DNA of 64,000 nucleotides from Bugula neritina. Taxonomy: Eukaryota; Animalia; Bryozoa. The notes beneath the pieces were generated by a model that searched no databases, was not told where the DNA came from, and was given only the letters and a program-made list of their open reading frames with translations. Made by a program: the position numbers and the translations under genes. The DNA is taken from the NCBI GenBank assembly GCA_964035545.1, contig OZ037773.1:1951751-2015750 (forward strand), written 5' to 3'. Below, one piece after another: positions 4,853-62,765 of the stretch; position 1 is the stretch's first letter; each line of letters opens with the position of its first letter.

Positions 4853-7800
4853 ATGTCGGATGACTTTCCGTTCAAGGCTGAGTATGCTAAGAGTGGCCGA
4901 GCTTCATGCAAAAGTTGCACAAATTCTATAGCAAAAGACGCATTACGTTTAGCTATTATGGTTCAGGTATGTAATTTAAATTAAATTTAATTCTAGTGTT
5001 TTACTAAGATAACTGACAGTAGCTACTAGTACTGGAGTTGATGACTATCTAAATTTCTATAAATCTAAGTGTAACCTAAACTTAAAGTTACTGTATCAAT
5101 TAGCCTATAGATAGTTATCAGCTATGGACTTATGGAGGTCTCTGAATTGTTGCCTTGATTGGTCACAATCAACTTGATTGTTACCAATCAAGGCAATAAT
5201 TCAGAGACCTCCATAAGATAGGATTAAGTTTTTGTTCAGTCAATACAGCACAATCAGTACTAACTGTATGGCTATTGACTAATGACTGTTAACATATTAC
5301 CCATATGAGGCACACTCTTTCCTCCCTCTAGGGCGGTCTAGCGTGATGTTCGCTTTGAGTAAGTTCGTGTAATACTGATACTGATGGTGATAGTATTAGT
5401 CACATACAAATTACAATGTAATTTAAGTTAGGCTACTTAGCCTTATACTTATAGTCTGAGTTATACTTCATACAGTTATATACTTTTAGTTACTTTAAGT
5501 TAGTTATAATGTACTTATAGTTATAGTGTATCTCTATAAGTTAATCTAAGTTGACTTTGAGCTGTAGTGATCACATTTACTGTAACATGATCACTAGCAC
5601 TAGTGTGAGTACTCAGCTGTGTATCAAATTCAATATAAGTATTAATATGACTATGAATAATCACTATGATTATAATTATTACTTGGTAACCTTTTATCGC
5701 CATGACATGATTGGGTGGCGAGATTATCATTATGATCATCAATCAATAAAGTTAAATGAATAAGTATAATCACCATAGACGCATGTGATAAAACTAAGTT
5801 AGCAATATACAGTGACTAGGTTTACGGCTATCTTGTAAGATTGAGTATAACAATTAGTTTATCTGATATAAAATACTATTGTTATAAATTCAATTATACA
5901 TAGACTAAGTGAGTAGTGATAGTCATAGACATAGTGATAGTGCAAGTGATAATGATTCTCATACTCATGGTTCAAATAGGCATTTGGTGCCTCGTATTTT
6001 TATAACTAAATGTAAAATTTATTATTGCATTTGTTATTATATAGGTAATTATTATTTTGTTCATGCCATATAGTCTTAGATAAGATACAGTAAAAATATT
6101 AAATTTTATGCTTAGTTTTAATTTGACTTTTAACTTGGGTATTTTGATATCTTCTTTATTTGTTCATGTTAGGGAGCAGCCGTGGTCTAGGGGTTAGAGC
6201 GTTTGCCTAGTAAACATGAGGTCATGGGTTCGAGCCCAGAAAAAGGCCATTGGTGATGTTAGGAAGAGCATCCAGTCATAATTGCTTCTGTGCCTCATTT
6301 GAACAAGTCCTTAGTCAGTTCTAACAAAAACCCTTCCATCAGGGGTTTCCCACAGGGATAGCTACTATAAACTTGCGTGAAGTTTTTCTTTATTTGTTCA
6401 TGTTGACCCAATTTAGTAACAGCTTGGTGTAGATGTGAATGAGTGAATGCCACAAAAAGTTATAGGCCTACTATACTTTTAGAGTTATTCATATTGAGCT
6501 TTTTTTTTATTTTTTTAGAAGCAATCATCAATATGAGTCTTGAGCTAACTTTAGGACGTATTCCTGAATAATCAAATAAGTTGCATGTTGCAGTCTCCAC
6601 ACTTTGATGGCAAACAACCCAACTGGTTCCATTTTCAATGCTTCTGGAAGCGAGGACGACCCACGTCGTCTACTGAAATCGCCGGGTTTGATGGTCTTCG
6701 TTGGGAGGATCAGGAAAAAATAAATGGGAAGCTTTCAGGTTCGTATTAGTTATTTAAGGGTGAACTGTGCTAACAATTCTTATGCGATAATAAACTATGA
6801 AGGGTAAATGAAGTAAAGTATGGTTTGAATACTTTATGAAGGGTAGAGTGGAGTGTGGGAATGATTTACTATTTTCTTAGAAAGTTTCAGCTGATGATTA
6901 TATGCTCTGTAACATTAGTCATGGTCATGGACTTGCTATTTTAGAACTGGCCACACTATCATAACTCTTCTTTCCAAATAGTCACAGCTACAAGAATTAA
7001 AGCCTACATTGTTGTAAAAATTGTAAAATATGTAAAATAGCATTCGGTAATTGCTAGAAAATACTCATGTGTCTCTGTAACAGCAGATGTAATACCACCA
7101 GTGTGTCTTTGTAGCAGTAGATGTAACAATGTTGAATCAGGTAATTGATGGAAGATTTCACTCTTTTTCACAGGAGGAAGTAAAGGTAGTAGCTCAACAG
7201 CTGGTGTGGCAGAAAGTGGAAACTTCTCTGCGGAATATGCCAAGTCTGGGAAGAGCAAGTGTCGGGGTTGTGAAGACTTCATAGCTAAGGTGTCTATCCT
7301 AATGCTTGTGCATATATACAATGTGCTATACACACACACATATATAATATATATATATATATTACTACACACTGTGTTATACGTATATGCACTGTTTTGT
7401 ACATATATACACTGTGCTGTACATATACAACACTATCTTGTATTATCCCCTGCACCGTGTTATACCTATATAGTACTATACACTGTGTCATACATATGTA
7501 CTACTATACACTGTATTATACGTATGTACTACTATACACTGTATTGTACGTATGTACTACTATACACTGTATTGTACGTATGTACTACTATACACTGTAT
7601 TATACGTATGTACTACTATAAACTGTATTGTACGTATGTACTACTATACACTGTATTATACGTATGTACTACTACACACTGTATTATACGTATGTACTAC
7701 TATACACTGTATTGTACGTATGTACTACTATACACTTTGTTATACGTATATATTACTATACACTGTGTTATACATATGTACTACTATACACTGTATTATA

Positions 7801-10800
7801 CGTATGTACTACTATAAACTGTATTGTACGTATGTACTACTATACACTGTATTATACGTATGTACTACTATACACTGTGTTATACGTATGTACTACTATA
7901 CACTGTATTATACGTATGTACTACTATACACTGTGTTATACGTATGTACTACTATACACTGTATTGTACGTATGTACTACTATACACTGTATTATACGTA
8001 TGTACTACTATACACTGTATTGTACGTATGTACTACTATACACTGTATTGTACGTATGTACTACTATACACTGTATTATACGTATGTACTACTATAAACT
8101 GTATTGTACGTATGTACTACTATACACTGTATTATACGTATGTACTACTACACACTGTATTATACGTATGTACTACTATACACTGTATTGTACGTATGTA
8201 CTACTATACACTTTGTTATACGTATATATTACTATACACTGTGTTATACGTATGTACTACTATACACTGTATTATACGTATGTACTACTATAAACTGTAT
8301 TGTACGTATGTACTACTATACACTGTATTATACGTATGTACTACTATACACTGTGTTATACGTATGTACTACTATACACTGTATTATACGTATGTACTAC
8401 TATACACTGTGTTATACGTATGTACTACTATACACTGTATTATACGTATGTACTACTATAAACTGTATTGTACGTATGTACTACTATACACTGTATTGTA
8501 CGTATGTACTACTATACACTGTGTTATACGTATGTACTACTATACACTGTATTATACGTATGTACCACTATACACTGTATTATACGTATGTAGTACTATA
8601 CACTTTGTCCCGGTAGGGGGAAGCTAGACTTGCTGTCAAAGACTTCACCAGCCAAAGAGCCATAATGTATGGTGCCCAGAACCTCTGGTACCATGTTGAC
8701 TGTTTCGTGTCCAAAAGAGAAGATGTTGGCTTCACTGCGGATATGAACCCAGACAAGTATGATCTCTGTCTATAAATGTATTTGCATATTTATACTCCTG
8801 TATATTGTATGATGCTTACATTATATTATACCTACCTGTAAGTATAAACTACTATATACCTGTATATTATATTATACCTACGTGTAAGTATAAACTACTA
8901 TATACATGTATATTATACTATATCTACGTGTAAGTATAAACTACTATATACATGTATATTATACTATACCTACGTGTAAGTATAAACTACTATATACCTG
9001 TATATTATATTATACCTACGTGTAAGTATAAACTACTATATACCTGTATATTATACTATACCTACCTGTATATTCAGAATGCAAGGGTTTGGCTCACTCT
9101 CTAAAGATGATAAAGATGAAATTCTTAACAAACTGGGAAAAGGAGACAAAAGGTGTGTTTAGATACTTATATGTGTATGAATGCCTGTACGTCTTTGCAA
9201 GTATATGTCTGTGTGTCTACACATTTACGGTTCTGTCTGCCTGTATGTCTACACATTTATGTCTGTAAGTCTGTCTGTGTGTCTACACAGTTTTATTTTG
9301 TCTGTAAGTCTGTCTGTGTGTCTAGTAAAAAGAGAAAAGCAGACACTTCTAAAGATGTTGTTGATTCAAAAAAATCGAAGAAAGATTCAGGAGAGGCAAA
9401 GCAGCTTAAGGTAACTTTTATTTAGCCTTAGAAACTTAGCATTGTAGTTGGGGTGTATGACGCAGTGCTGCTCTTTCTATGTATTGAGGAGATTGTACTC
9501 TGGTTACAGGACCAAAGCACTCTCATATGGAAGTACAGAGATGGCCTCCAGAAGGAGGTGTCCACCCAGGCTATGAGAGGGCTGTTGGAGTACAACAACC
9601 AGAATGTGGTGAATGGAGAGAGTGATCTCTTGAATAGGGTGTCAGACTGTATGGCATTTGGCGCTCTGAGCAGGTGCCCCGAGTGTAAGGATGGTCAGTT
9701 GGTATTCAGGTATGTTCATGTCAACTGTTACTCCGAACAGGTGCCCTGAGTGTAACAATGGTCAGTTGGTATGTTCGTGTCGACTGCCATTTGGAGCAGG
9801 TGCCCCGAGTATCAGGTCATGTTGCAGAACGGATGCCTATCATTGTACGGGAAACTTGTCAGAGTGGACCAGGTGCTCCTATTCTACTAACACCCCTAAG
9901 AGAGTTGCATTCAAGGTGCCAGCTGAATACCACGATGTTGCATTCTTAAAGACCTACAAGTATGTTAAAAGAGACCGTATCATTCCTAAAGCTACCCTAC
10001 AGGCCAGTAAAGTAAATCATCAGGCGTTAGCTGGCACTTCCTTTTTCGCCTACGGTTCGTATCTTATCTCCTCTTTGATTAGTTGTAGATTCTATATTTG
10101 ATTGGCTACTGTTGCACTCTGTATTGTTATGTAACCTGTTAACATTTGCTCATCTGTGATTGGTCAGCATTGACTGTGTATTTCACAGGAAGTACCAGTA
10201 AAGATAAAACGGCTCTGAAAACTTTGATATCTAGTCTCGGTGGGAAACTTGTCTCTAAACTCGATGGCTCTGTAACCGCTGTTATAAGTAGCAAGGCAGA
10301 CGTTGAGAAGATGAACAAGAAGATGGCGGAAGTAAAAGCACTGGACATTCCTGTCCTTGCAGAGGGTACGACCTCTAACACATAGCACTAGTCATATATT
10401 ACTCTATTACTAGTCATATTACTCTATTACTAGTTATATTACTCTATTACTAGTTATATTACTCTACAACTAGTTATATTACTCTATTACTGGTCATATT
10501 ACTCTACTGCTAGTCATATTACTCTATCTGTCTTGATAAATGTGTTTCTCTAGGTTTCCTGGAGGCATGTAAAGATGGTAAACCAATAGAATTGGCTAAA
10601 ACTTACAAGTTGTCAGACTGGGGAAAGCCTTTTGAGAAATGCTTCACTGATGTTGTTGACAGCAAAAGATCAACAAAAAGTGCTGCCGTGCGCGCTGCTG
10701 AGGCTAGAGCAGGTTCGTTTATACTGTATGATACTATACTGTATTATGTTATACTGTATGATACTATACTGTATTATACTATACTGTATGATACTATAAT

Positions 10801-13800
10801 GTATTATACTACACTGTATGATACTACACTGTATGATACTATACCGTATGATACTATACTGTATGATACTATACTGTATGATACTATACTGTATTATGTT
10901 ATACTGTATGATACTATACTGTATTATACTATACTGTATGATACTATAATGTATTATACTACACTGTATGATACTACACTGTATGATACTATACCGTATG
11001 ATACTATACTGTATGATACTATACTGTATGATACTATACTGTATTATGTTATACTGTATGATACTATACTGTATTATGCTATACTGTATGATACTATACT
11101 GTATTATACTATACTGTATGATACTATACCGTATTATGCTATACTGTATGATACTATACTGTATGATACTATGCTGTATGATACTATACTGTATGATACT
11201 ATACTGTAATTATGCTATACTGTAGGATACTATACTGTATGATACTACACTGTATGATACTATACTGTATGATACTATATTGTATGATACTACACTGTAT
11301 GTTACTATACTGTATGATACTATATTGTATACTCACAGAAAAAGAGTTTCTGAAAGATGATGAAGGGGTACAGAAACTGATGGTGAAGGGAGGGGCGGCT
11401 GTGGACCCGGAAAGTGAACTTGACCAGGAAGCACATCTGTTGCAGGAGAAGGGAGAGCCTCTCAACGCTGTCCTCTCTATGGTAGACATCAGCAGCGGCA
11501 GCAACTCTTACTACAAGCTGCAGGTGTTGGAGCACGACTCTGTCAACAGGTACTTTACATTCAGTTCAAGTACCTGCTATGTGTCATCACATAGTACACT
11601 CAAGCTTTGATTTTATTATATAACAGTCTGATAAACAGCAAACTTACATATTGCTTAGAAGCCTGGGGAAATGCCCCTAAAACCCATCTGAACAAGTTGC
11701 TTTTAATTCAAAAACGCATTATTCGCATTATTTTCCACAAATCACCTACTGAACACACGTCACCTCTATTTATCAAAGCAGAAATTCTTCCTATTGATCT
11801 CTTGTATATCTACCGCCTATGTCTTCTTGGTCATTCAGCTTATTATACTCCATCTCACACCAAACAACCACCAACTTACCTCACCAGACATTCTGAACTT
11901 TCCTTACCCTTACCTCTCTCTACCTCCGCAGCAGGTCATCGTCAAGTGTCCTACCAGATGTCTAGCAATTGGAATAAACTACCTCTGACTTTAAGACATC
12001 ATCAAAGCTTTGCCACATTTAAAATATTGTTGAAAAAGCACCTACTAAAATCTTTAACTTAATCTGAATAAATAGTTCCCACTATTTTTTCAACTGCCAC
12101 TTGGGCCCCGCTCCTTGAATAGCTATGCTACTGAGCACATGGGCCCCCATCTTGACTTCGATTGATATTATATATAAATTGAATTTAGCTCTTTTTGTGT
12201 TACTGTTGTATATTTGTATTTTTTTGTCCTTTTGTTTTTTTTTTGATGGAAATAAAGAAAACAAAACAAAACAAGTACCTGCTATGTGTCATCACATAGT
12301 ACACTCAAGTACCTGCTATGTGTCATCACATAGTACACTCAAGTACCTGCTATGTGTCATCTTATAATAAACACAAGTACCTGCTGTGTGTCATCACACA
12401 CTACACGCAAGTACCTGCTATGTGTCATCACACACTACACTCAAGTACCTGCTAAGTGTCCTCACATACATGTTGTCTCATCAGCTTGGTGTTTGCTTTA
12501 GATACTGGCTGTTCCGCTCTTGGGGTAGAATAGGCACAACAATCGGTGGCAATAAGCTGGAGAAACTTGGCTCCAGACATGAATGTGTGGCTAGGTTCAA
12601 GGTGAGCCGTCAATCAACGTGTTACTTTTTCCTTTAAACTTTTAAACCACCTCCAACGTCTGAGTTGCTGATGTAGTGTCTGTGTTAGAACTACTAGAAC
12701 TTATAAATCCAAGTATAGAATATCATTGTATGTAACTGCCATATATTTCATTTCATATTTATTCGTAGAGCCGTAAATAGCGTAAATCGTTTTGAGTAAT
12801 CTTATCCTGAGATGATTTTCTTGGTGCTATTATTTGTCAATTCCTTGTGTATTATATATTTCATTAGTGTAATTCAGGTTTGGTATTTATAAAACTGCTA
12901 TCGATACTCTTGTCAGGACCTGTTTCGAGAGAAAACCGGCAATGTTTGGGGAACTAAAGAATTTGAGAAGAAACCAAATAAGTTTTATCCATTGGAGATT
13001 GACTACGGTCAGGTAATAGACGTCTACCTATTAGTGATATGGTAGGCTATATATATATGAGCGTGCGTGCGCATATATTATATTTGTTTGAAGATTATAT
13101 AATACGCTGTCTATGTAATACTTTAGGAAGATGAAGAAATACAACTTAGCGCAATGGAAGAATCCTCCAAGACGGCCAGCAAACTGAGCAAACCTGTGCA
13201 AGAACTCATCAGAATGATATTTGATATTGAGACTATGAAACAGACTATGTTAGAGTTTGAGGTAAGGGACTGGTAAAACAGACTATGTTATGGTTTAAGA
13301 CTGGTGAACAGACTATGTTATGGTTTAAGACTGGTAAACAGACTATGTTATGGTTTAAGACTGGTAAACAGACTATGTTATGGTTTAGGACTGATAAACA
13401 GACTATGTTATGGTTTAGGACTGGTAAACAGACTATGTTAGAGTTTGAGGTAAGGGACTGGTAAAACAGACTATGTTATGGTTTAAGACTGGTGAACAGA
13501 CTATTGTGGTTAATGCTGATTGGCCTGCTCATAGATTGACATGAAGAAGATGCCTCTGGGAAAGATATCAAAAAAGAACATTTCTAAAGCCTACAAACTG
13601 CTCACTAAATGTCTCAAGGTAAGTCATTGCATTATTGTAGCACCAGCATTGCAAGGTAACACATAATACTCACTTGTTACATATGTTATATTTTTGGTAC
13701 TTTTAGTGTATCTTCGCTGCTTTTATTGTTTTATTTCTTTAATTGTTTCATCTGTTCATTTATCAATTTGATATATTTTAACTAATAATTCAATACCTAT

Positions 13801-16800
13801 TGTACGTGAATATTTTAGCACGCAGCTCTCCTCAATATACTTTACTCAAAATTTGATTGGTTGAGTTTAAGTTTAGCCTTCACTGGTCAAAATAGACGTC
13901 ATTTGTTGTCCATAAGTAACTGGAGTTGTCCCAACATGGTGTTGCTAGTATGGCTTGTCAAGTGTTAAGTGAATGCAGAAAATAGCTGATTACAAAAAGG
14001 TAGAAACTCCATGAGTTGTGAGTCCAGTCTATTTGGTAGTGCCAGTCTAACCGGCTGTTGCAATGGTACGTTGCACTGCTGTAATCTTTATTCTGGTTCA
14101 ACTGAGTCCTTTCTCCGTGTGTTGGTCAGATGGTGGAGGAGAAGGCATCCCCTGCCCAACTGCTTGACATGTCTAACCAATTCTTCACACTCATTCCTCA
14201 TGACTTTGGGATGAAGAAACCTCCAGTCCTGGACACAGAAAAGCTGATAAAGGTGAGTAGTGAGTAGTCAGTTATCAGTAGTAGCACTGGTAGTAGTTGT
14301 AGTCACAGTAATACTAGTAGTGGTAGTGGTGGTAGTAGTAGTAGCAGTGGTACTAGAAGTAGTAGAGTCGTAGTAGTGATGGTAGTAGTGCTGGTAATAG
14401 TAGCAGCAGTAGCATTGGTGACAGCTAGGTTTGGTATTTTAATGTGGTTTTATATGCTTTCACTTTAAGGCCAAAGTAGAGATGTTAGACAACTTGAAGG
14501 AAATAGAGTGTGCATACAATCTGCTGAAGACCAGTGCGGGTGGTGCGGATACCAACCCTGTTGACTCACACTATGAGTCACTGAAGACTAAGATTGAGCC
14601 ACTGGAGAGGTCGAGCGAGGAATGGGACCTCATCAACCAATACACCAAGAACACTCACGGCAAAACTCACTCCTCCTACAGCTTGGATGTTGACGAGGTA
14701 TGGACAGGTGCTGTTTGGGTCGAGTCATCGCTGTAGTTGTCTGCCTTCTGGTTGTACTAATACGTGACTGTTATACAGGTGTTTACAATCAAGAGAAATG
14801 GAGAGAAGTCCAGATATTCACCTTTCCGGGATTTGTCAAACAGGAAGCTGCTATGGCATGGGTCAAGGTTAACTAACTTTGCCGGAATTTTGAGCCAGGG
14901 TTTAAGAATCGCTCCCCCAGAGGCGCCTGTGGTGTGTTATTCGTTCTGATACTATCATATGTTATATACACTGATACTATTGTATGTTATATACTGATAT
15001 TATTGTATGTTATATACTGACATTATTATATAATATATATATATACTGACACTATTGTATGTTATACATGTATATACTGACACTATTGTATGTTATACAT
15101 GTATATACATGTATATACTGATACTATTATATGTTATACATGTATATACTGATACTATTGTATGTTATACATGTATATACTGACACTATTGTATGTTATA
15201 CATGTATATACTGACACTATTGTATGTTATACATGTATATACTGATGCTATTGTATGTTATACATGTATATACTGATGCTATTGTATGTTATACATGTAT
15301 ATACTGACACTATTGTATGTTATACATGTATATACTGATACTATTGTATGTTATACATGTATATACTAACACTATTGTATGTTTATATATTATTGCAGAC
15401 TGGCTATATGTTTGGTAAAGGCATATACTTTGCCGATATGGTTAGTAAAAGTGCCAATTACTGCTTTGCCCAGAGGAACAACCCGTATGGTCTGCTGCTA
15501 CTTTGTGAAGTTGCGCTTGGAAATATGTAAGTCATTTCTTACTCAACTAGTCAAGTCACTTTTGTTGTGTTTAAGTTACTGTTCCGCCGAGTTTAAATCT
15601 TTCTCAATCATATATATGTTGTTCTGATGGTGTTGCAGGCATGAACTGGGCGGTGCCAGTTACATCAGCAAGCTGCCCAAGGGCAAGCACAGTGTGAAGG
15701 GGTGTGGTATGACAGAGCCAGACCCCGCCCACCTTCATGTGACTAAGGATGGAGTACACATACCTCTGGGAGAAGGAGTGGAGGCGAAACCTTCCATGGG
15801 TCGCACTTCTCTTCTCTACAACGAGTATCCTTTGGGTTGTCATTCTCTCTGTGCATTACTTACTCTATACAGTACTTACTCTATACGATACTTACTTTAT
15901 ACAATACTTACTCTATACAGTACTTACTCTATACAATACTTACTTTATACAATACTTACTCTATACAATACTTACTCTATACAATACTTACTCTATACAA
16001 TACTTACTCTATACAATACTTACTCTATACTTACTCTATACAATACTTACTCTATACTTACTCTATACAATACTTACTCTATACTTACTCTATACAATAC
16101 TTACTCTATACAATACTTACTCTATACAATACTTGCTCTATACATTACTTACTCTATACAATACTTGCTCTATACATTACTTACTCTATACAATACTTAA
16201 TCTATACAATACTTACTCTATACAATACTTACTCTATACTTACTCTATACAATACTTACTCTATACGATACTTACTCTATACGATACTTACTCTATATAA
16301 TACTTACTCTATACAGTACTTACTCTATACAATACTTACTCTATATAATACTTACTCTATACAATACTTACTCTATACAATACTTACTCTATACGATACT
16401 TACTCTATACGATACTTACTCTATACAATACTTACTCTATACAATACTTACTCTATACAATACTTACTCTATACAATACTTACTCTATACAATACTTACT
16501 CTATACAATACTTACTTTGTACAATACTTACTCTATACAATACTTACTCTATGCGATACTTACTCTATACAATACTTACTCTATACATTACTAACATTGC
16601 TGTGTATACTCACACTGCTGCATGTACTTACATTGCTGTGCATGTACTCACATGACACTACAATACTTTGTCTAATGGTAGACATGCAGTGTCAGGGTTA
16701 CAATATGAAGACTTCCTTATCGTTCTCTCAGATACATCGTGTACGACGTGGCCCAGCTGAATATCAAGTATCTGGTCAAGTGCAAGTTCAACTACAAGTA

Positions 16801-16804
16801 CTAA
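4853..16804 (+). CDS. PARP1: Poly(ADP-ribose) polymerase 1, 21 coding exons
   Basis: Exons 4853-4966, 6594-6738, 7174-7289, 8617-8756, 9078-9152, 9326-9410, 9510-9709, 9828-10054, 10189-10365, 10554-10712, 11339-11549, 12502-12601, 12917-13012, 13127-13261, 13535-13618, 14130-14252, 14470-14697, 14779-14931, 15399-15526, 15639-15824, 16732-16804 splice in frame. Domains in order: Zn1 ([14 protein letters not shown]...WFHFQCF), Zn2 ([14 protein letters not shown]...WYHVDCF), KKRK NLS, Zn3/PADR1 ([13 protein letters not shown]...[11 protein letters not shown]), BRCT-like, WGR (FRSWGRIGT), regulatory ([16 protein letters not shown]), catalytic (LLWHGSR...[13 protein letters not shown]...LLYNEYIVYD) with H-Y-E triad. 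Confidence 0.97.
5129..5217. repeat. 89-bp near-perfect palindrome (possible MITE) in PARP1 intron 1
   Basis: cttatggaggtctctgaattgttgccttgattggtcacaatcaa-c-ttgattgttaccaatcaaggcaataattcagagacctccataag: 44-nt arms with about 2 mismatches and a 1-nt spacer; ends TA|TGGAGG...CCTCCA|TA. Confidence 0.75.
6172..6385 (+). mobile_element. tRNA-Thr(AGT)-derived SINE with 19-bp target-site duplication
   Basis: A box (TGGTCTAGGGG), anticodon arm CTAGTAAAC, B box (GGTTCGAGCCC), non-tRNA body ending ctataaacttgcgtga. Direct repeat ttctttatttgttcatgtt at 6152-6170 and 6386-6404. Confidence 0.92.
7470..8605. repeat. 28-bp minisatellite in PARP1 intron 3
   Basis: (tatacactgtattatacgtatgtactac)n. Confidence 0.95.
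8820..9075. repeat. Approx. 47-bp minisatellite in PARP1 intron 4
   Basis: (tatacctacgtgtaagtataaactactatatacctgtatattatat)n, running into the acceptor. Confidence 0.85.
9668..9815 (+). repeat. Degenerate triplication of the PARP1 exon 7 3' end forming intron 7
   Basis: (g)agcaggtgccccgagt... recurs at about 9668, 9735 and 9794; the second copy still encodes [11 protein letters not shown] versus exonic [11 protein letters not shown]. Confidence 0.85.
10718..11332. repeat. 15-bp minisatellite filling PARP1 intron 10
   Basis: (atactgtatgatact)n. Confidence 0.95.
11605..12274 (+). mobile_element. 5'-truncated LINE (CR1/L2-like ORF2 C-terminus plus 3' UTR)
   Basis: ORF 11607-12062 [18 protein letters not shown]...[12 protein letters not shown]...WNKLP...FKILLKKHL resembles the post-RT C-terminus of CR1/L2-group LINEs. 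Ends in AATAAA plus an (AAAAC)n tail and interrupts a 34-bp minisatellite. Confidence 0.85.
12272..12470. repeat. 34-bp minisatellite (first unit at 11567-11604, split from the rest by the LINE)
   Basis: (caagtacctgctatgtgtcatcacatagtacact)n. Confidence 0.9.
13238..13503 (+). repeat. 30-bp repeat derived from the PARP1 exon 14 end and donor
   Basis: aaacagactatgtta first occurs in the exon; a full second GAGTTTGAG|GTAAGG lies at 13441-13455. Confidence 0.9.
14947..15385. repeat. 31-bp minisatellite in PARP1 intron 18
   Basis: (tatactgacactattgtatgttatacatgta)n. Confidence 0.95.
15825..16731 (+). other. U12-type (minor spliceosome) GT-AG intron of PARP1
   Basis: 5' splice site GTATCCTTT; branch-like TTCCTTATC at 16713-16721, 10 nt before the end of the intron; splits the catalytic Glu codon GA|A. 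Confidence 0.9.
15855..16590. repeat. 16-bp minisatellite inside the U12 intron
   Basis: (caatacttactctata)n. Confidence 0.95.
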
Positions 16805-17030
16805 ATATTCACTTTCTTTTATTCTCAAGTCTTTCCGCTCCATCCAGAGTACATCTCTAGCTGTGTTCACCAAGCAATCAAATAATAGTATCCACTTTTA
16901 TATTAGCAGTAACGTGCTTATAGCTTTATTATTGCTATCTCTATTTTACTTGAGGTTTTTTATATCATTTCTAACTTTCACTGTTCAGAAATGGCAACCA
17001 GATTTGCATGGGTACAGGTTTATAATATAT

Positions 17031-17036
17031 AATAAA
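17031..17036 (+). terminator. Candidate polyadenylation signal of PARP1
   Basis: AATAAA about 230 nt after the stop codon. Confidence 0.45.
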
Positions 17037-18965
17037 AATACATATTTACTCTTTATAATAACGCATATTCTACACTGTATGATAGCACATATTTACATTG
17101 TATAATAACACATGTCTACACCGTATAATAACACATGTCTATTCTGTATAATAACACATGTCTATTCTGTATAATAACACATATCTACACTGTAAGTGTA
17201 TAATAATGCATATCTACACTGTATGATAGCAATACCTGCACTGTATGATAGCACATATCTACACTGTAAGTGTATAATAATGCATATCTACACTGTATGA
17301 TAGCAATATCTACACTGTATGATAGCACATATTTACATTGTACAAGCATGGTTTAAAATACTCCATTATTTAGTAGTCATGGTTAATAATAGGTAAAAAT
17401 TGGATGACGTTAATATTGTTTTATTGTTGCCTTCCCCCCCCCCCTTCCGAGGGTCAGCATCTGCTCAGATATTTTGTTCACTAGATGGAATTAAAAAGCT
17501 GCTTACATGCACGTGGGTGCTAGTGACTGTAAACCTAACACAAAATATAGTTTAACAAACTACAAAGTCTAACTTACGCTACACAGTTTACTACACTGTC
17601 TAACATACTACACACTCAAACACACTACACAGTTTAGCACACTGAATAGTGTAAAACACTACACATTGTGTTTTACTCTAAAGTTTTTCATACTGCATTA
17701 AAATTTATGTCTTTGGAATCGTCTTATCATGTACTGTCCTAATTTTGCCCCTTTGTATTTTGTTTCAGAGTTATCTTTAAAATATTTTGTCTAGAGATTG
17801 TCTTCAAATCTTGCCACAGAAATGTTGATTATATTGCCGCTAGAGTTATCTTCTCTCACTAAACTTGATATTTTGAACTGTGCTGTATCAACTGATTAAT
17901 GTGTAAATATTGAGAGACTTGCAGCTAATATTAAACTTAGGGCTGCTGCAAAATTTCTTGCTATTCAGGCTACTTCTGTCATTGATGAGTTTTCTATTAA
18001 TTAAAAAATATTGCAATCAAGAGTTGGCAGTGTGAAACATGAGCAGGAATGAGCTAGATTATAATCTGATTACTCTTCTGAACATCCTGCTGTTGCTACC
18101 CACCTCACAACTACTACTGATAACCACAGATACTGTTGACACCCATCAGCTATTACTGACACCCTGCTACTAGTGCTGATACATATCAACTACTACTGCT
18201 GATACATATCAACTACTACTGACACAACCTAGGCTGCTGAATGCCAAGCTGTGTCAGGGTTTGACTTGCTTAATATCATATTAATACGATTCTAGTGATA
18301 ATATAATTAGTTGTGGTGCTGATGAAATTTATTATTGAATATTCACTTTAGTATGCAATGCATACAACTAAGTGAATATAAAGCCAGTCTGATTCTATTT
18401 AATATACTACTATACTATATTTAATATGCTATTATACTCGTATGTATCCTTTTTGTTCTAGCAATTCCCTCCTTTTATTGTCTACTATAACCTGTATGAA
18501 GGCTTCTGTAATCAAATGATGAATAGCCTAACTTAGCCCTGGGTCTACACTGCCATGCGTAAACAATGGGCTGCAATGTTAGTGCTTCCAACTGTAGCTG
18601 TTTACCTGTGGTTACTTTATTAAGGCAGCACGGCTAGACTGATGCTAGGATAAAATGGGTTGCATAGTAGCTTGAGGTAACAGTTTGTATGCTACTGCTG
18701 CTGCTGCTGCCTCTACTACATCTACACTAGCACCTGCCCCTACCTGGTAAGATATGTCTACTGTGATTGGGTAGTTTAATGGGAAGCAGCATCACACTGT
18801 GCTGACTTGCATGGTTATTGTTTTTAATGGAGTTCATGAATTAGAAAACCATATAGTTCTTAATTTATTTAAATTTACGAACCAGTTGCTGCATATGCGT
18901 GTACAGTAAGTGTGTACACATTAAATATTCTACACAGTAGGTATATAGGTACAGTAAGTATATAT

Positions 18966-19167
18966 CTCATGCAAGTTTATAGTCGCCATCCCTGAGAACT
19001 CCCTGATGGAAAGGGTTTTTGTTAAATCGGACTAAGGACTTATTCAGATCGGGTACAGGAGCAATCATGACTAGATGCTTTTCCTAACATCACCAATGGG
19101 TTTCATCTGGGGTTCGAACCCATGACTTTGTGTTTAACGCTCTAACCCCTAGACCACAGCTGCTCTC
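18966..19167 (-). mobile_element. tRNA-derived SINE
   Basis: Reverse complement of the 6172 family; flanked on both sides by gtaagtatata. Confidence 0.9.
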
Positions 19168-19611
19168 TGTAAGTATATACACAGCAAGTATATACACAGT
19201 AAGTATATAAAGTAAGTATATACATTAAGTATAACCACAGTAAGTACATACACTATAAGTATATACAGTAAGTATAAACATAGTAAGTATATACAGTAAG
19301 TATATACAATAAGTATGCACAGTAAGTACATACACAGTAAGTATATACAGTATGTATATACACAGTAAGTATATACAGTAAGTATAAACAAAGTAAGTAT
19401 ATACACGGCAAGTATATAATGTATGCATTTATTATTCAGATAGTAAGCATTTAAGGAGATGCAGTCTGCAAGGGTTGTTATCTGATAATAATAAAGTGAA
19501 CTCTGTTTATTCAATGCAATGTTTGTACCTATATTTACTGACAGATTCTAATATACTACAATGTGCTGCCAAATACACTGACACCCTGTGTGCTGCCAAT
19601 ACACGCTGCCG

Positions 19612-28824: not shown

Positions 28825-28859
<35 letters not shown>

Positions 28860-49908: not shown

Positions 49909-49964
<56 letters not shown>

Positions 49965-52900
49965 TTACTACTACTACTACTACTAATACTACCAGTACTA
50001 CTAATACTACCAGTACTACTGCTACTACCAGTACTACTGCTACTACCAGTACTACTGCTACTAGTTTATAGCTTTAATTATTATCTTGTATTTTGACAGA
50101 AGAAAATGGAGAGAAACAGGAAGACACAGGGGCTGCTGTCAGCTCTGCTTACAGAGAAAGTACAAGTCGACAGCCTCAGGTTACAGACTTCACCCTTGTC
50201 TAGACCAGTCTCTGCAGACACCAGTATGTTACACTTTACTGACTAGTACCTAGTAGTTAGACACTTAGCTGATACCATGAAACACCTGAATGACACTTTT
50301 TTGTTGCTTTAGTTAATGGCATTGCAAGATTAGAGGCGCGGGTGAGTCACCTCTCCACACGAACAAGCAGTAAGTTAAGAAGTTTGTGTGAAAGAATGGA
50401 GACAGACGAAGAGCTCAATGAACTGCACAACCTCTACTCTGACTGGAGGAACAGAGTGACACACTTTGCTGCTCAGCCAATCACAGGTTGCGTAAATTTA
50501 GCAACTCCTTACTAGGTCATGTTAGTCAGACTAGTGAGTTACTGGCAGTTAGTGAGAGTTACTGGCTGTTAGTAAGTTACTGGCAGGTATAATCACTTAC
50601 TTTTGTTTTTCTGCAGGTGACGTGGCAGAGTTGCAGGCAGAGAAAGCCAGCTGTCTCTTCTACATAACTATGGCTGAAGTATACAAACTCTCTCTCACTT
50701 CTCACCCCTCTTTCCTTGCTGACAACCACCAGGAACTAGTAGGACTAATCCAACTGAGGGAACACAGTCTGAGCTCTTTGATACAGAAACACAGTTTGTT
50801 TGAGAGGCTGAAAGAGAAAGTGACTGACTCGCTGTTGCAGCTTGAATCTCAACTACTCTTGCCGGACGGCAGTTACGGCAGCCATGTTGGACTCAACAGC
50901 CGAGTCCCAAAACTCAAGGCAGCGTTTGAGCAGCACCAGCGGACATGTCTTGTCATGAGACAGATCTGCCAAGAGTTGCTGCCGCACTGTAATGGTGGAG
51001 CCAAGACTAGGCTAATAGCAGCAGTAGAGAGGTCAAGCAGTCGGTGGCAAGGAATTCTGTCTAAACTGATGTCACTTAGTGAAGAGTCAGCGGCTATTGT
51101 CACCAATTTTAGAAACTTGACGCATAGCCTAGTGTCTTTTGCTAAGGAGGTAGGTAGTGTGAGGCGGGGTACGGGCGGCCCCATACCTGAACATCAAGAT
51201 GACCTGCTGGAAAGACAGTCACAGGCTGATGTGTTTGACTGGAAGTTGGAGAAACTCAACACCAAGTACTCCGTTATAAAATTTGAGTTTACAACTCTGT
51301 GCTCTCAGGTGGAGCAACCCGCAGACATGGAGCTATGCTTTAGTTTGGGTAGACATCTGATGGAAGGCGCAGAGTTTATGGTAGCCGGTGTGAAACACGA
51401 GCTGAACGATAGCTTGTCTGTCTGGAACTATTTCATATCTGATGTCAACTCAACTCTCTTAGAAATGCACAAACTTGAGAAGCTGTATCTGAATGAGCGA
51501 CAATTAACGATTGAGGAGCTCTTGGAAGAGATGAAGACACAATATTCTGCTGACTCGCGTAGAGTCATACAGAAGGTGCATACTGGGGCATATGCTATAT
51601 TTACTTGCACTTTAGAATACAATTTAGTAATATACACTGTATATACTTACACTGCGGTAGTATGCACTGTAGTGGTAGACACTGTGGTAGTCTACACTGT
51701 AGTAGTACATACTGTATATACTCACACTATTTATATTGTAGTACACACTGTAGTAGTACACATTGTAGTGGTACACACTGTAATAGTATACAATGTAGTG
51801 GTATGCACTGTAGTAGTACACACTGTAGTAGTACACACTGTAGTAGTAGACACTATAGTGGTACACACTGTAGTAGTACACACTGTAGTAGTAGACACTA
51901 TAGTGGTACACACTGTAGTGGTACACACTGTAGTAGTACACACTGTAGTAGTACACACTGTAGTAGTAGACACTGTAGTGGTACACACTGTAGTAGTACA
52001 CACTGTAGTAGTAGACACTGTAGTGGTATACACTGTACTAGTACACACTATTATCATATCATCTGCAGGCGGAGCAGCTGGTCTCCAAGGGCACTCGTCT
52101 TCTCACTCTCACTAGTGACGTGTTTGGTTCTGCGATTCAGCACGGAGTTGTCTCTCTCCAGAGTGCTATCACACATCTCACTAGACTGTCTGCTGCTAGG
52201 GCTAGTAAACTCAAAGATACAATGTCAGCCATCTTAGAGTTTGAGTCTGGGATGAAATCCTTGAACCAGTGGCTCAAGGCCACTGAAGGGTCACTCAACT
52301 TCACTCCGGCAGACTGGCAGGAAGGCACAGTGCTAGCCAAGTACTTTGTTTCACTGTATAACATATATGATGTGTGAATATTCACTATGTACTAGCATTG
52401 GGATGTCTTTGTAAACTGTACATAAGCATCTTATTCTGTAGCCACCAGTACCTGAAACAACTGGAGAAAGAGATCTCTCACCACTCTAGAACTGTAACTG
52501 CTGTGATTAATCTCTGCAGTCTTCTGCAGTACGACAAAGATGCAGGATATGACATCACCGTCAAACAGGAGTTGTCTGCCGTCAAAGATAGGCTCAAGAG
52601 TCGCTGGAAAAAGCTGTGCGAAAAGGTAGATGAGAATCTGGTGGTTTGTCTTTGTTCTTCTGTAATTAATTGTTGAATACTTCAGTAAATTACAGTTCAA
52701 TTAATTATATCTGTAGATTGCATTCTAACTAAAAAAATTTCTGGATTACATTCTTATTAATTTTCTGTAGATTACATTTTGGTTATTATTTTCTGCAGAT
52801 AATCACTAAGAAAGAACAACTGTATGATCTTGATCAAGTCTGGTCACAGATGAGATCTCAAACAAGCTCATTGATCTCTAAGCTGCTAGAATACAAAGAG

Positions 52901-55900
52901 AAGTGTGATGACCAAGAGAGGTCTATGTCTATAAGGTCAAGGACTCATCAGTTTGAACAGTTCAGCCAAATGCTTAAAGATTGTGAAGCTAAGCATGAAG
53001 ATATGAGGCTACTAAACAATCGACTGAGGTAGGAGCTTTTCAACAACATTTTTGCTGCTTTAGTTTGATTTTACTGATTAAATAATCCAGTGTCTGCTAC
53101 AACCATGTTTCAGTCAACTATGCCCACATGTTTATCAATTTCTCATTGCAAAGATATCTTACACGGAATAACATGATCGACAAGTCTGAATGCGTGAAGA
53201 AAGCAGTAGCTCGGTGCACGGAGTTGTGGGACACCGTCTACCAGTCTCTCTCTCAACTTGTAAAACAGATGAGGAAATCTCATGAGGCGTGGACAGACTT
53301 TGTTAAGGAACGTGATGTCTTACTTATCAAAGTTAGCAATCTCAGTCTAACTTTGAAAACAGACTCTTCCACTCGAGAGAATGTTGAGGAAAAGCTGAAA
53401 AAATATCAACTTCAGGTAAACCCAGATATTTTAAGTCATTTTCTATTATCTGGCAATAATTTTTAGTTGTTTGCCATCTGACATTATTTTCTAATTGTGT
53501 TGAGTCAGGAACTTCCCCTTATTTCTGCTTGTGTATTATGATCATCTTTGTCTTTATGCTGAGTCTCTGCTGGTGTTTCTGCAGATCAATTCTCTCCTTG
53601 ACCTTCCGGTAACCAACCTGCGGGCAGTGTGCACTACAGAGGAACATTGTAAACTTGATAAGCTGATACAAGAGCTCAATGTCAGCGTCAATACGTTGCG
53701 TTGTGAGCTGCGACCTCAGGATGACTTCCACTCTGTAGAGAAGGAGCTGGAGCTGGCCCTCCATCAGACAGAAGACTTGGAGCATGGTCAGATAGTGTAT
53801 TATGATTATTCTCACATTTTTCTTTACTATCACACAACATAACGTCATATCTAAAGGCAGATTTAAAGTAGTGTGGTTGTACTGGTTTTATTTTTTAGAT
53901 TTAGAGTCGTTCAACTCTGACCTCAGGTCATCCTCTTCCGTCCCGACCTCTGACCTTTTACCAGATGAGAGCACACTAGAAACTGACAGTAAAGTGAAGG
54001 AAATTGAGAGGAGAGTTGACCAAATAGCACAGCGAGCAGCCATACGTCGTCAGCTCAGACCTCCCATATCGCGACTAGAAAGGGCACAGAGCCAGTCGTC
54101 TGCTGTGTCTGTCAGTTCAGAAAGGGCTACAGCTGACACAATTAGATCACGTAGAAACACACAGACAGCTCATCCCCACATCACACATTTCTCAACTACT
54201 TCTCGGAATTTTTCACGGCGTTTACGAACTCGTTCCGCTGATAATCCTTCAAGCCGACCCTCAAGTCATGATGGTGAGAAGGACATGAGCCTAAGGCTGA
54301 GAGAAATTGCTCTGTCATCACCGCTACCTCTCACAATAAAGAACTTGCAAGCCTTTAACCAGAGTGTTCTTCCGTCTACATTCAAATTTGATTGGTTGGC
54401 TAATCAAGGAGCACGCTCTGTAACCAGCACAGCTCTAACCTCTGCTACTAACTTAGCTACTAGTAAGAGTTGTTAGTTGACTAACAAATAGCATTAGATA
54501 TACTAGTGTACTAATGTACAAGTGCGTAATATACTCAATATACTCTCTACTCTGTACTGTATAGTGACTATTCAATATACTCTCTACTCTATAGTGACTA
54601 CTACTCAATATACTCTCTACTCTATACTGTATAGTGACTACTACTCAATACACTCTCTACTCTATACTGTATAGTGACTACTACTCAATACACTCTCTAC
54701 TCTATACTGTATAGTGACTACTCAATATACTCACTACTCTATACTGTGTAGTGACTGCTCTATATACTCACTACTTTAAGCTCTATACTGTATAGTGACT
54801 ATTAAATATACTCACTACTCTATACTGTATAGTGACTACTACTCAACATACTCTCTACTCTATACTGTATAGTGACTATTCAATATACTCTCTACTCTAT
54901 ACTGTATAGTGACTACTCAACATACTCACTACTCTATACTCTACACTGTATAGTGACTATGCTATACGGTAAAGACTTTCAACGTGTTATTTGTTTTTCA
55001 GCAGCTGAGGCCATGCCTCCTTTTCAAAAATATCTTAATGCTAGACGTAGGAGTTTCTCACAAGAAAGACAGGGTAGTGTGAAGGGTGCAGCTAAGTTCC
55101 CTCCCAACAGGTTTGTTATATGATACTACAGATACTCAGTTTATGATTGCAGAAATCTATTCTTCTCTAGCCAGTTCTCTGTGTACGCTGTGCATCATTC
55201 TATCACTTCTCTCTCCATGTAGAACTAGGAGCTTGTCTTTAGAGCGGAATCTGACTGGAGAAGCATTGCTTCAAAGGTCAAGATCAACCACACCTACAAG
55301 GCAAGGATTGCATAACACTTTGTCTCCTTTACCTGCACTATCGGTAAACTCGCAGTCTACAGGATTTCTTCTCTCAGCTGCACCCGTCCTGTCCAGTCCA
55401 TCTACTAGGAGGTCTCTTTGTAAGTCAGCATGCCTTGTTCTCTTTTGTATGTTCCTTTTATTCAGTATATGCTTTTTAATTTCTGTATCCATCTATAGCT
55501 TTTTTCTATATTTCTTCTATACTATCTCTATATTCATCACCTTCTATACTATCTCTATATTCATCACCTTCTATACTATCTCTATATCCATCACCTTCTA
55601 TACTATCTCTATATTTATCACCTTCTATATTATCTCTATATCCATCACTTTCTATATTATCTCTATATCCATCACCTTCTATACTATCTCTATATTCATC
55701 ACCTTCCATACTATCTCTATATTTATCACCTTCTATATTATCTCTATATCCATCACCTTCTATACTATCTCTATATTCATCACCTTCCATACTATCTCTA
55801 TATTTATCACCTTCTATATTATCTCTATATCCATCACCTTCTATACTATCTCTATATTCATCACGTTCTATACTATCTCTATATTCATCACGTTCTATAC

Positions 55901-58900
55901 TATCTCTATATTCATCACCTTCTATATTATCTCTATATCCATCACCTTCTATACTATCTCTATATTCATCACCTTCCATACTATCTCTATATTTATCACC
56001 TTCTATATTATCTCTATATCCATCACCTTCTATACTATCTCTATATTCATCACCTTCCATACTATCTCTATATTTATCACCTTCTATATTATCTCTATAT
56101 CCATCACCTTCTATACTATCTCTATATTCATCACGTTCTATACTATCTCTATATTCATCACGTTCTATACTATCTCTATATTCATCACCTTCTATACTAT
56201 CTCTATATCCATCACCTTCTATACTATCTCTATATTCATCACCTTCTATACTATCTCTATATTCATCACCTTCTATACTATCTCTATATTTATCACCTTC
56301 TATATTATCTCTATATCCATCACCTTCTATACTATCTCTATATTCATCACCTTCCATACTATCTCTATATTTATCACGTTCTATACTATCTCTATATTCA
56401 TCACGTTCTATACTATCTCTATATTCATCACGTTCTATACTATCTCTATATCCATCACCTTCTGTACAATCTCTATATCCATCACCTTCTATACTATCTC
56501 TATATTTATCACCTTCTATACTATCTCTATTATATTCATCACCTTCTATACTATCTCTATATTCATCACCTTCTATACTATCTCTATTATATTCATCACC
56601 TTCTATACTATCTCTATATTCATCACCTTCTATACTATCTCTATATTCATCACCTTCTATACTATCTCTATATTCATCACCTTCTATACTATCTCTATAT
56701 TCATCACCTTCTATACTATCTCTATATTCATCACCTTCTATACTATCTCTATATTCATCACCTTCTATACTATCTCTATATTTATCACCTTCTATATTAT
56801 CTCTATATCCATCACCTTCTATACTATCTCTATATTCATCACCTTCTATATTATCTCTATATTCATCACCTTCTATACTATCTCTATATTTATCACGTTC
56901 TATACTATCTCTATATTCATCACCTTCCATACTATCTCTATATTTATCACGTTCTATACTATCTCTATATTCATCACCTTCTATACTATCTCTATATTCA
57001 TCACCTTCTATACTATCTCTATATTTATCACCTTCTATATTATCTCTATATTTATCACCTTCTATACTATCTCTATATCCATCACCTTCTGTACAATCTC
57101 TATATCCATCACCTTCTATACTATCACTATATCCATCACCTTCTATACTATCTCTATATTCATCACCTTCTATACTATCTCTATATTTATCACCTTCTAT
57201 ATTATCTCTATATCCATCACCTTCTATACTATCTCTATATTCATCACCTTCTATACTATCTCTATATTCATCACCTTCTATACTATATCTATATCCATCA
57301 CCTTCTATACTATCTCTATATTCATCACTTTCTATACTATCTCTATATTCATCACCTTCTATACTATATCTATATCCATCACCTTCTATACTATCTCTAT
57401 ATCCATCACCTTCTATACTATCTCTATATTCATCACTTTCTATACTATCTCTATATTCATCACCTTCTATACTATCTCTATATTTATCACCTTCTATATT
57501 ATCTCTATATTCATCACCTTCTATACTATCTCTATATTCATCACCTTCTATACTATCTCTATATTCATCACCTTCTATACTATCTCTATATTCATCACCT
57601 TCTATACTATCTCTATATTCATCACCTTCTGTTTCCTGTTTCAGCTCCCCTCTCAGTCCGATTCTCACCAGCTGTTGAGAGAGAGTTGTTGTCTCCATGT
57701 GAGAGAAGTGAACCTCACTTTGACATCAAGCAGTGTCTCCAGTGGGTGGATAAGCTAGAAGTTTTACACACGAGCATATGGAGTGTGAACAGTGTGATGG
57801 GGGACAACCTGAACACGCTAGTCGCACACTGCAAACACTATAATGTAAATTCACTCACCATGTTTTGTGTTCTATATCCTACTCTATGCAAACTGCCAGT
57901 TCTAACAGGTTTACTCGGCTTCTCCATTACTGCACCTACCACCATCTAGATGCCGTAGTGGAGAAATTGAGATAGCCTAAGTTTTTAGAAAAATGTTTTA
58001 GATTTTGGTTTGGGGCACGGGTGGAAATGTTTGCGAGAACATAACTTCTTTTGCTACATTTCTAATCTAGAACACAGGCTTTTCTCAGTTTGTCCATATT
58101 TGCGCCTACCACCATTATTGCAGGAACTCTTGTCGCAGAGCCAATGTTACAAGGCGGCCATTTTTCCTACCTCCACCGTTACTCAGCGAGAGCAGTTAAA
58201 CGCTCGGTGGAAGCAAGTAGAAAGATATTTCTCATCAAGAAGGGACACTCTAGTTCGAGCTCTGGTGGCCAGTGCTGAGTTGAAGAAGTTAATAGGATGG
58301 TTTGCCGATGATGTCACCCACGCTGAACTCAAGTTACTAGGTGGAACTCAGTCTAAACAGGTGAGTCATTTCTTTTACTTCCTGTATACCATAGTGTATG
58401 TGTAATTCCTCTGTATACTGTATATGCACTGTACTTTCTGTATATACAGTAAGTACAGTGCATATACAGTAAGTACAGTACATACAGTACTTACTGTATA
58501 TACTGTATATATGCAGTGTATGCTGTATATACTGCACTTACTGTATGTGTACTTACCGTATCTAATGTATATACTGTATATGTACTTAATGTATAATGCA
58601 TATACTGTATGTGTATTTACTGTATATACTGTATATGTACTTAATGTATAATGCATATACTGTATGTGTATTTACTGTATATACTGTATATGTACTGTAT
58701 ATGTACTGTACATGTACTGTATATGTACTGCATATACTGCATATATACTGTATATACTGTATACGTACTTCTTCTATATAATGTATATGCACTGTACTTT
58801 CTGTATAATATACAGTAAGTACAGTACTTACTGTACTTACTGTATATACTGTATATGTACTTACTGTGTACTTACTGTACTTACTGTATATACTGTACAT

Positions 58901-61754: not shown

Positions 61755-62765
61755 CAGTAAGTGTAATATACTGTTGCATAGTAAGTGTAATATACTGTTG
61801 TATAGTAAGTGAAATATACTGTTGTATATAGTAAGTGTAATATACTGTTGTATATAGTAAGTGTAATATACTGTTGTACAGTAAGTGTAATATACTGTTG
61901 CATAGTAAGTGTAATATACTGTTGTACAGTAATTGTAATATACTGTTGTAAAGTAAGTGTAATATACTGTTGTAAAGTAAGTGTGATATACTGTTATAAA
62001 GTAAGTGTAATATACTGTTGTATAGTAAGTGTAATATACTGTTGTATAGTAAGTGTAATATACTGTTGTATAGTAAGTGAAATATACTGTTGTGTAGTAA
62101 GTGTAATATACTGTTGTACAGTAATTGTAATATACTGTTGTAAAGTAAGTGTAATATACTGTTGTAAAGTAAGTGTGATATACTGTTGTAAAGTAAGTGT
62201 AATATACTGTTGTATAGTAAGTGTAATATACTGTTGTATAGTAAGTGTAATATACTGTTGTACAGTAAGTGTAATATACTGTTGTATAGTAAGTGTAATA
62301 TACTGTTGTATAGTAAGTGTAATATACTGTTGTACAGTAAGTGTAATATACTGCTGTACAGTAAGTGTAATATACTGTTGTATAGTAAGTGTAATATACT
62401 GCTGTACAGTAAGTGTAATATACTGCTGTACAGTAAGTGTAATAATATACTGTTGTATAGTAAGTGTAATATACTGTTGTATAGTAAGTGTAATATACTG
62501 TTGTAGAGTAAGTGTAATATACTGTTGTAGAGTAAGTGTAATATACTGTTGTATAGTAAGTGTAATATACTGTTGTACAGTAAGTGTAATATACTGTTGT
62601 ACAGTAAGTGTAATATACTGTTGTACAGTAAGTGTAATATACTGTTGTACAGTAAGTGTAATATACTGTTGTACAGTAAGTGTAATATACTGCTGTACAG
62701 TAAGTGTAATATACTGTTGTACAGTAAGTGTAATATACTGTTGTACAGTAAGTGTAATATACCTA
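61755..62765 (+). repeat. 24-bp minisatellite with GTAAGT in nearly every unit
   Basis: (agtaagtgtaatatactgttgta[c/t])n, about 42 units. Confidence 0.95.

Follow-up and report, generated by a model that had tools for sequence, protein, structure and literature searches.

Private minisatellite arrays inflate introns in a 64-kb window of Bugula neritina and overlap splice donors at chance level

Genes at the locus

The window, by which we mean the whole 64,000-nt stretch analyzed here (Bugula neritina, contig OZ037773.1, positions 1,951,751 to 2,015,750), is AT-rich (29-44% GC), and two plus-strand genes occupy most of its positions 7290-62765. Their introns are crowded with tandem-repeat arrays, some of which contain the end of the preceding exon together with its splice donor, and these arrays are the subject of this study. 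The two genes are:

7174..16803, + strand: PARP1 homologue; 19 modeled exons, 18 introns, continuous frame of 897 amino acids
19612..59080, + strand: giant coiled-coil gene; 67 modeled exons, 66 introns, open frame of 4383 amino acids

The gene models were built by an exon-chain dynamic program, trained and tuned on RNA-confirmed exons (6 kb), and were then curated by hand with the help of donor quality, the RNA and homology to PARP1. Neither frame is interrupted, and the two models have 84 introns in all. Boundaries are supported by RNA for 45.1-51.1 kb only (11 introns) and by homology for the PARP1 homologue; the remainder follows from open reading frames (ORFs) and the splice-site model. 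At 20406, 25260 and 31279 the model also allows an alternative, longer in-frame exon that extends into the array. The exons of the PARP1 homologue match the Pfam families PADR1, WGR, PARP_reg and PARP as well as PARP1 chains in the PDB. The model of the giant gene extends to at least 59 kb and is uncertain at its 5' and 3' ends. Its sole family hint is a sub-threshold match to Pfam Spectrin_Anc-1 (E = 0.017), pointing to an ANC-1/nesprin spectrin-like protein, and a KASH-type terminal exon was looked for in this gene and none was found.

The model of the PARP1 homologue has a single PARP-type zinc finger. Its first coding exon (7174-7289) has no in-frame ATG; a GTG stands at the position aligning to Met1 of PARP1, and an acceptor-like site lies at 7173, just 5' of this exon. 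The true start may be an upstream exon or a non-AUG codon.

Three RNA-type runs (X1-X3), whose sources are a 'symbiont metagenome' study and the organism itself, were aligned as assembled contigs to 45100-51090. They contain 11 spliced joints, all of them GT-AG, and keep one open frame when individual sequence differences are allowed for. About 5% of exon positions differ between these contigs and the window (45253-51090), and a Joint Genome Institute (JGI) contig, L001, differs by about 11%. The public RNA and metagenome data thus derive from diverged lineages or cryptic species, other than the sequenced individual. The DNA run X6 matches the window without differences outside the repeats.

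Array load and intron inflation

After merging, Tandem Repeats Finder (TRF) yields 88 arrays that together span 22.4 kb, which is 35% of the window; as a control, sequence resampled with a second-order Markov model of the window gives 0-5 arrays and at most 199 bases. Positions 7290-62765 hold 77 arrays that make up 38% of the bases. Units measure 15-60 bp in 62 of these 77 arrays, among which 41 have at least three copies and 18 at least ten. Repeats make up 0.8% of exon bases, all in junction overlaps, 55% of intron bases and 27% of the bases outside the gene models, the latter including 59-64 kb, which could be intronic or intergenic. An array is present in 55 of the 84 introns (10 of 18 in the PARP1 homologue), and 38 of the 84 consist of array for at least half of their length. 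Four arrays illustrate the range:

7453..8604, + strand: 28-bp x 41 array filling intron 1 of the PARP1 homologue (7290-8616), found by TRF
50532..50586, + strand: 20-bp x 2.9 array, compared with L001
51613..52049, + strand: 15-bp x 29 array in an intron that measures 493 nt here
55514..57630, + strand: 27-bp x 78 array, the largest, which fills a 2225-nt intron, found by TRF

Array-free introns have a median length of about 119 nt, and when the arrays are taken out of the array-bearing introns a unique remainder with a median of about 98 nt is left. Ordinary introns of about 100 nt have thus grown to lengths of up to 2.2 kb. The arrays are private to their introns: 81 arrays fall into 76 similarity components, related pairs occur only within the same intron, and flanks are never common. 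A previous reading of this DNA, made from the sequence alone, had described more than 30 arrays of largely different 15-60 bp units, exons that stay unique, and local private arrays that inflate short introns, and all of this is borne out by the counts given above. Arrays are not restricted to introns, however, because the 2.8 kb between the two gene models (16804..19611) hold six of them and are 29% repeat.

Higher-order periods of 90, 92, 126 and 140 bp were found by TRF, and a recurrence of about 476 bp was seen by eye in the 7453 array. Such periods point to block duplication, which is also seen in classical minisatellites.

Arrays at splice donors

Each junction was compared with its own intron and with the other 83 introns, and the other junctions were in turn compared with its intron. 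Seven donors score above both permutation nulls (13262, 25792, 31280, 39436, 47213, 48340 and 49414). When the last 40 exon nucleotides are tested likewise, 6-7 matches are obtained, 9710 among them; exon-interior control windows give 0-2 marginal matches. Overall, copies of exon end plus donor are present at 7-9 donors, and the arrays at junctions have TRF units of 22-60 bp in 2-18 copies. The donor-side arrays are:

9668..9827, + strand: copies of the final ~40 exon nt, old and diverged, in intron 9710-9827 (score 29 against a null of 11); the copied donor is deleted
13238..13504, + strand: 30/90-bp array with a unit of 24 exon nt plus donor (sequence and permutation tests); a second perfect donor copy lies at 13449/13450
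25792..26675, + strand: 21-bp x 45 array from the first intron base; the junction copy includes ~12 exon nt
31259..31321, + strand: two 33-bp copies of exon end plus CAG/GTAAAT (permutation tests); because the 33-bp unit is in frame, the donor used is ambiguous
31878..32155, + strand: 24-bp x 11.6 array that starts exactly at the donor GT and holds 18 decoy donors
37138..37544, + strand: 22-bp x 18 array of CAGA/GTAAGT-like units, starting 21 nt past the real CAGA/GTGAGT donor at 37116/37117; junction score within the null range
39416..39491, + strand: 31-bp x 2.5 repeat of 20 exon nt plus donor (permutation tests)
47213..47305, + strand: two-copy repeat of exon end plus donor with a period of ~85 nt; the donor is RNA-confirmed and its downstream copy destroyed
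47854..47993, + strand: 60-bp x 2.3 repeat with CACAG/GTATGT decoys; RNA uses the first donor, 47841/47842
48325..48420, + strand: 38-bp x 2.5 repeat of 15 exon nt plus donor; RNA uses the first donor, 48339/48340
49378..49779, + strand: 50-bp unit, made up of the last 36 exon nt and CAG/GTAGGT, in eight copies of 98% identity; RNA joins 49413 to 50100, and seven decoy donors score in the true-site range

Most of the junction arrays named by the sequence-only reading are clear, namely those at 9668/9710, 13238/13262, 31261/31280, 39420/39436, 48339/48340 and 49378/49414. Three others named there, at 37111 (8 exon nt), 47833 (about 10 of 11 nt) and 31875 (no measurable exon share), cannot be separated from the splice-consensus background, while 25792 and 47213 are additional cases of exon end plus donor.

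Donor choice

The first of the duplicated donors is used at five junctions, three by RNA (47841, 48339 and 49413) and two by homology (13261 and 9709), and the idea that the spliceosome picks the first donor, put forward from the sequence alone, has held at each of them. RNA contigs join the first donor to the next exon at all three sites. At the 49378 array the joint is read as 49409(+4) to 50096(+4), which equals 49413 to 50100, and is present in three RNA runs from two studies. In the PARP1 homologue, exon 13127-13261 matches residues 4-37 of a solved PARP1 chain and exon 13535-13618 the directly following residues 38-62, and the PADR1 zinc-ribbon profile runs unbroken from exon 5 (position 15) into exon 6. 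The arrays at 13238 and 9668 are therefore excluded from the protein.

Acceptor junctions and chance expectation

At 32591-32748, 46367-46522 and 30929-31099 only 0-13 nt separate the array from the acceptor, and the exon share is at most ~5-8 nt. The suggestion, made from the sequence alone, that arrays also end in the acceptor therefore stands in so far as they extend to acceptors, but not for the exon, which contributes at most those few nucleotides. Two of these arrays are:

32591..32748, + strand: 41-bp x 3.9 array ending at the last intron base, with an ACACAG decoy acceptor per unit
46367..46522, + strand: 20-bp x 7.8 array within intron 46314-46535, which RNA confirms; sequence resembling the unit continues to the acceptor, and the upstream copies are without AG

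Junction matches on the acceptor side are weak, with scores of 13-16 against nulls of 12-14 and at most ~8 exon nt; the one exception to this limit is a weak, mismatch-rich alignment at 25261-25573.

The expected number of junction overlaps was obtained from a seeding null for 64 intronic arrays with units of at least 7 nt. All arrays of an intron were collapsed to one unit, a seed of that unit length was placed at random, and the inclusion of six or more exon nucleotides was counted as a hit. Per junction type this gives 8.1 +/- 2.6 arrays, or 6.3 when 150 nt is set as the minimum length of a collapsed intron. For donors, 7-9 arrays are seen where 6.3-8.1 are expected (P(X>=7) = 0.44-0.72), so that the donor overlap is at chance level and there is no enrichment. 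For acceptors, 0-2 weak cases stand against 6-8 expected (P = 1e-4 to 0.04); this deficit is real. The position of the array in the unique remainder of single-array introns is compatible with a uniform distribution (Kolmogorov-Smirnov p = 0.22) and is symmetric, as 12 of the 44 single-array introns have an array that starts within 10 nt of the donor and 10 have one that ends within 10 nt of the acceptor.

Decoy sites and sequence composition

Intron arrays are poor in AG on the sense strand: the ratio of AG to CT is 0.41 there, against 0.70 for unique intron sequence and 0.86 outside. Sense-strand arrays contain ~109 decoy donors and ~110 decoy acceptors within the score range of true sites. 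When the best position weight matrix (PWM) scores of sense and antisense strands are compared, there is no sign of selection against decoy donors (p = 0.86) and a weak signal of selection against decoy acceptors (p = 0.037). GTAAG occurs in the units of 3 of 64 arrays against ~1.6 by a rough estimate, which is no enrichment. Two 6-mers do recur: among 70 unrelated arrays, 8 contain CACTGT and 9 contain ACTGTA, where ~1-1.6 are expected from unique-intron frequencies. Taken together they are found in 8-10 unrelated arrays with an 8:1 sense bias, for example at 7453, 17032, 22975, 28962, 32591 and 51613.

Arrays in related lineages

A protein search with a 959-nt exon led to genomic contigs from four relatives, one of them close and the others more distant. 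The closest, the metagenome contig L001, has 88.7% DNA identity and carries the same 15-bp array family in the same place as 51613..52049; at the 20-bp array of 50532-50586, which lies away from any junction, it has exactly one unit fewer. In L002 (41% protein identity) the exon orthologous to 48189-48339 has the same length, 151 nt, with AG before it and GT after it, and the same upstream intron holds a different, 30-bp array; repeats make up only ~5% overall. L003 has intronic arrays as well. The intron after the long exon is 493 nt long in the window and shorter in the relatives, with 313 nt (L001), 234 nt (L003) and 217 nt (L002). Since exon structure is shared with relatives while the arrays differ, the introns are old and the arrays young and lineage-specific; the propensity to form arrays is clade-wide, but extreme here. 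Metagenome scans with the exon before the 49378 array and with a PARP1 exon returned no related contigs.

In L002 a 19-bp array of GTAAGT-containing units (3484-3740) follows a GAG/GTAAGT site and may be a donor-derived array in another species.

Other features of the window

Transposon-related sequence is embedded in several introns. Between 11565 and 12469 a transposon fragment splits a 34-bp array, leaving one unit at 11565-11598 and the rest at 12272-12469; with units on both sides of the fragment, the array must be older than the insertion. The ORF 11607-12062 in this fragment resembles the tail of a reverse transcriptase and has no Pfam match. A 284-aa cysteine-rich ORF on the minus strand (27920-28774), also without a Pfam match, lies within an intron of the giant gene and is probably part of a mobile element. 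A tRNA-derived element resembling a short interspersed nuclear element (SINE) is located at 47351-47566 inside an RNA-confirmed intron, and its family must be very high-copy, as contig word depth is ~10^5 in every run, DNA and RNA. ARAGORN found no tRNA in the window, including at 47351-47566, and Rfam gave no match in the window at the gathering threshold. Below that threshold (gathering score 34), an inverted pair of matches to the type I hammerhead ribozyme was seen at 2800-2852 (-) and 2877-2929 (+), with 28.3 bits each (E = 6.8e-5).

Two further repeats were noted. Downstream of the last modeled exon of the giant gene, at 59740-60561, a 341-bp unit is present in two 100%-identical copies and looks like a very recent large tandem duplication. 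At the window edge (1-407), a 63/126-bp array has a long open frame of V/S/A/I-rich repeats, and it may be a coding repeat of a neighboring gene rather than a non-coding minisatellite.

Discussion

In this study, we propose that neutral birth and expansion of minisatellites, filtered by selection on splicing, probably accounts for the pattern. In this lineage minisatellites would arise and expand very rapidly wherever DNA is unconstrained, probably through local tandem duplication followed by slippage or by unequal exchange in whole units and multi-unit blocks. If ancestral introns were short (about 80-170 nt), a seed of 15-60 bp would often happen to touch a splice junction, and once expanded the array would soon represent most of its intron. 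Duplications inside exons would be removed by selection. Duplications that span a donor would be harmless, the 5'-most donor being used and the extra copies becoming intron, whereas those that span an acceptor would place a complete acceptor and exon start upstream, where they would be spliced in, and would be removed. Random seeding and selection would thus together produce private intron-filling arrays, chance-level copies of exon end and donor, and near-empty acceptors. Within this explanation, it is the mode of mutation and the action of selection on acceptors that we infer.

Several points weigh against it. The analysis covers one 64,000-nt window in which both modeled genes lie on the plus strand, and the majority of intron boundaries are modeled, without RNA verification. 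The RNA consists of assembled contigs, in which minor use of decoy sites or minor isoforms would be invisible. The density of arrays is 1.9 per kb in introns and 1.2 per kb outside (p = 0.09) and their share of bases is double in introns, an excess that pure neutrality does not predict. Some collapsed introns are just 30-60 nt long, and arrays must therefore also have replaced unique sequence. The histogram of array positions is mildly U-shaped (13, 5, 9, 3, 14), and the recurring CACTGT and ACTGTA hint at a sequence preference outside the model. In short, the account leaves aside the cause of the repeat-proneness, the modest intron excess and the common 6-mers.

Another candidate is a specialized, lineage-specific repeat generator, one that favors transcribed introns and/or a CACTGTA-like core and goes beyond neutral slippage. 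The excess of CACTGT and ACTGTA over the ~1-1.6 expected with its 8:1 strand bias, the repeat share of 55% in introns against 27% outside, and the ~5% repeats of L002 despite conserved introns are all in line with such a generator. The core is found in a minority of arrays, however, its strand bias may stem from selection against AG or from intron composition, the arrays per kb of introns and outside regions do not differ significantly (p = 0.09), the outside regions hold younger transposon DNA, and no candidate enzyme or element was found. We therefore regard a specialized generator as rather unlikely. A related and bolder version, which we consider a little more doubtful still, holds that a hyperactive minisatellite process prefers transcribed introns and the CACTGTA-like core, and that YAG/GTRAGT units form chains resembling recursive splice sites. 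The process would be recent, because a relative with the same exon structure has ~5% repeats compared to 35-55% here. If it were true, splicing to the AG of a copy would regenerate the same donor, so that splicing errors in the arrays would correct themselves.

The sequence-only reading had favored amplification anchored at exon-intron boundaries, with arrays growing from the splice junction; breaks coupled to splicing or to R-loops would be one example of such a process. The 7-9 arrays that include exon end and donor, the arrays within 10 nt of the donor in 12 of 44 single-array introns and the mild U shape would fit such anchoring, yet the overlap with donors is what random seeding predicts, acceptors are abutted as often as donors, six arrays lie between the genes, and most arrays begin 20-800 nt from any junction. 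A preference for intron edges is also expected if arrays erode their unique flanks up to the constrained splice signals. Among three observations that the same reading named as speaking against itself, two, random array boundaries and intergenic arrays, are essentially what the window contains. With donor overlap at chance, symmetric positions and arrays between genes, anchored amplification has been given up here as the explanation, and we hold it to be improbable.

Delivery of the arrays into introns by dispersed mobile elements, that is, satellites borne by miniature inverted-repeat transposable elements (MITEs), Helitrons or SINEs, is very improbable. Transposon fragments and the very high-copy tRNA-derived SINE are indeed present in some introns, but the 81 arrays form 76 unrelated groups without common flanks, the junction arrays are built of local exon sequence, and a transposon fragment splits an array, between 11565 and 12469, that was there before. 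A transposon-borne satellite was accordingly rejected as a candidate, as the same unit and flanks do not recur across loci. An assembly artefact, finally, is hardly credible: short-read contigs of X6 break inside arrays, but they enter them from both sides without differences, the independent L001 contig has the same 15-bp family and the 20-bp array minus one unit, L002 and L003 have intronic arrays too, and frames are open across all 84 modeled introns.

Splice-junction arrays of this kind are known from other animals. In amphioxus, minisatellite-like tandem duplications of exon-intron boundaries, called mirages, have been described in globin genes (PMC3087553) and in TnC and PGBD5 (PMC3902484), and PMC3087553 cites earlier ones in Adh3 (Canestro et al., 2002, Nucleic Acids Research 30:2871). 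Both there and in the window, units hold the exon end plus the splice site and normal mRNA is made. Amphioxus mirages have locus-specific units of 10-160 bp that include either the end or the start of an exon, and many copies keep the GT or AG. Their copy number varies between haplotypes, whereas the one-unit difference known here concerns a non-junction array only. In the amphioxus globins 5' and 3' boundaries are both duplicated, while here the acceptor side is nearly empty (0-2 weak cases, at most 8 exon nt). Moreover, mirages in the window are a chance-level subset (~10-14%) of ordinary private arrays that make up 55% of the intron DNA. With 35% GC and introns of ~100 nt, the window also looks unlike amphioxus.

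A parallel in layout comes from intron 7 (intervening sequence 7, IVS7) of human F7, which holds a 37-bp variable number tandem repeat (VNTR) whose first unit lies across the boundary with exon 7 (Borensztajn et al., 2006, PMC1557585). Identical pseudo-donors follow, and scanning from 5' to 3' leads to selection of the donor that lies furthest upstream (PMC1557585). The 49378 array has the same layout, with eight 50-bp copies, identical donors and the first one used in RNA. For F7, one locus in humans, scanning has been proved by mutation, whereas the present data comprise several loci in 64 kb with RNA at contig level. Tandem duplication across AGGT has also been linked to intron gain and sliding, in Drosophila (PMC2891723) and by Hellsten et al. 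(2011, PMC3265369). There, too, a duplicated splice signal is tolerated and one copy is spliced out, but such duplications make new introns within exons, while here old introns have been inflated, as the 151-nt exon is also found in a distant relative.

Introns in the mouse pseudoautosomal region and on bird dot chromosomes are reportedly rich in minisatellites and likewise loaded with tandem repeats. Those regions are GC-rich and recombination-driven. Unlike them, the present locus is AT-rich, and its repeat load seems to characterize the lineage.

The junction arrays of the window thus share with mirages and F7-type VNTRs the head-to-tail repeats of minisatellite size, the exon sequence plus splice site in the unit and the use of the authentic donor, while acceptor-side duplication is nearly absent. 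As boundary-spanning repeats with intact splicing were already known (PMC3087553, PMC3902484, PMC1557585), the proposal of an undescribed system is not supported. The arrays are of a known kind, what is distinctive here is their scale and density, and they reveal no new molecular system.

In summary, we have described introns in which ordinary, private minisatellites probably expanded by a neutral process under a splicing filter. The asymmetry seen in the window, in which duplication is tolerated for donors but not for acceptors, is a prediction of the rule that the first donor wins. If the pattern is genome-wide, Bugula neritina would offer thousands of natural duplications of splice sites and thereby a way to test in vivo the choice of donors and acceptors. 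It would also represent a case of extreme intron growth by minisatellites rather than by transposons, recent enough to be followed by comparing relatives.

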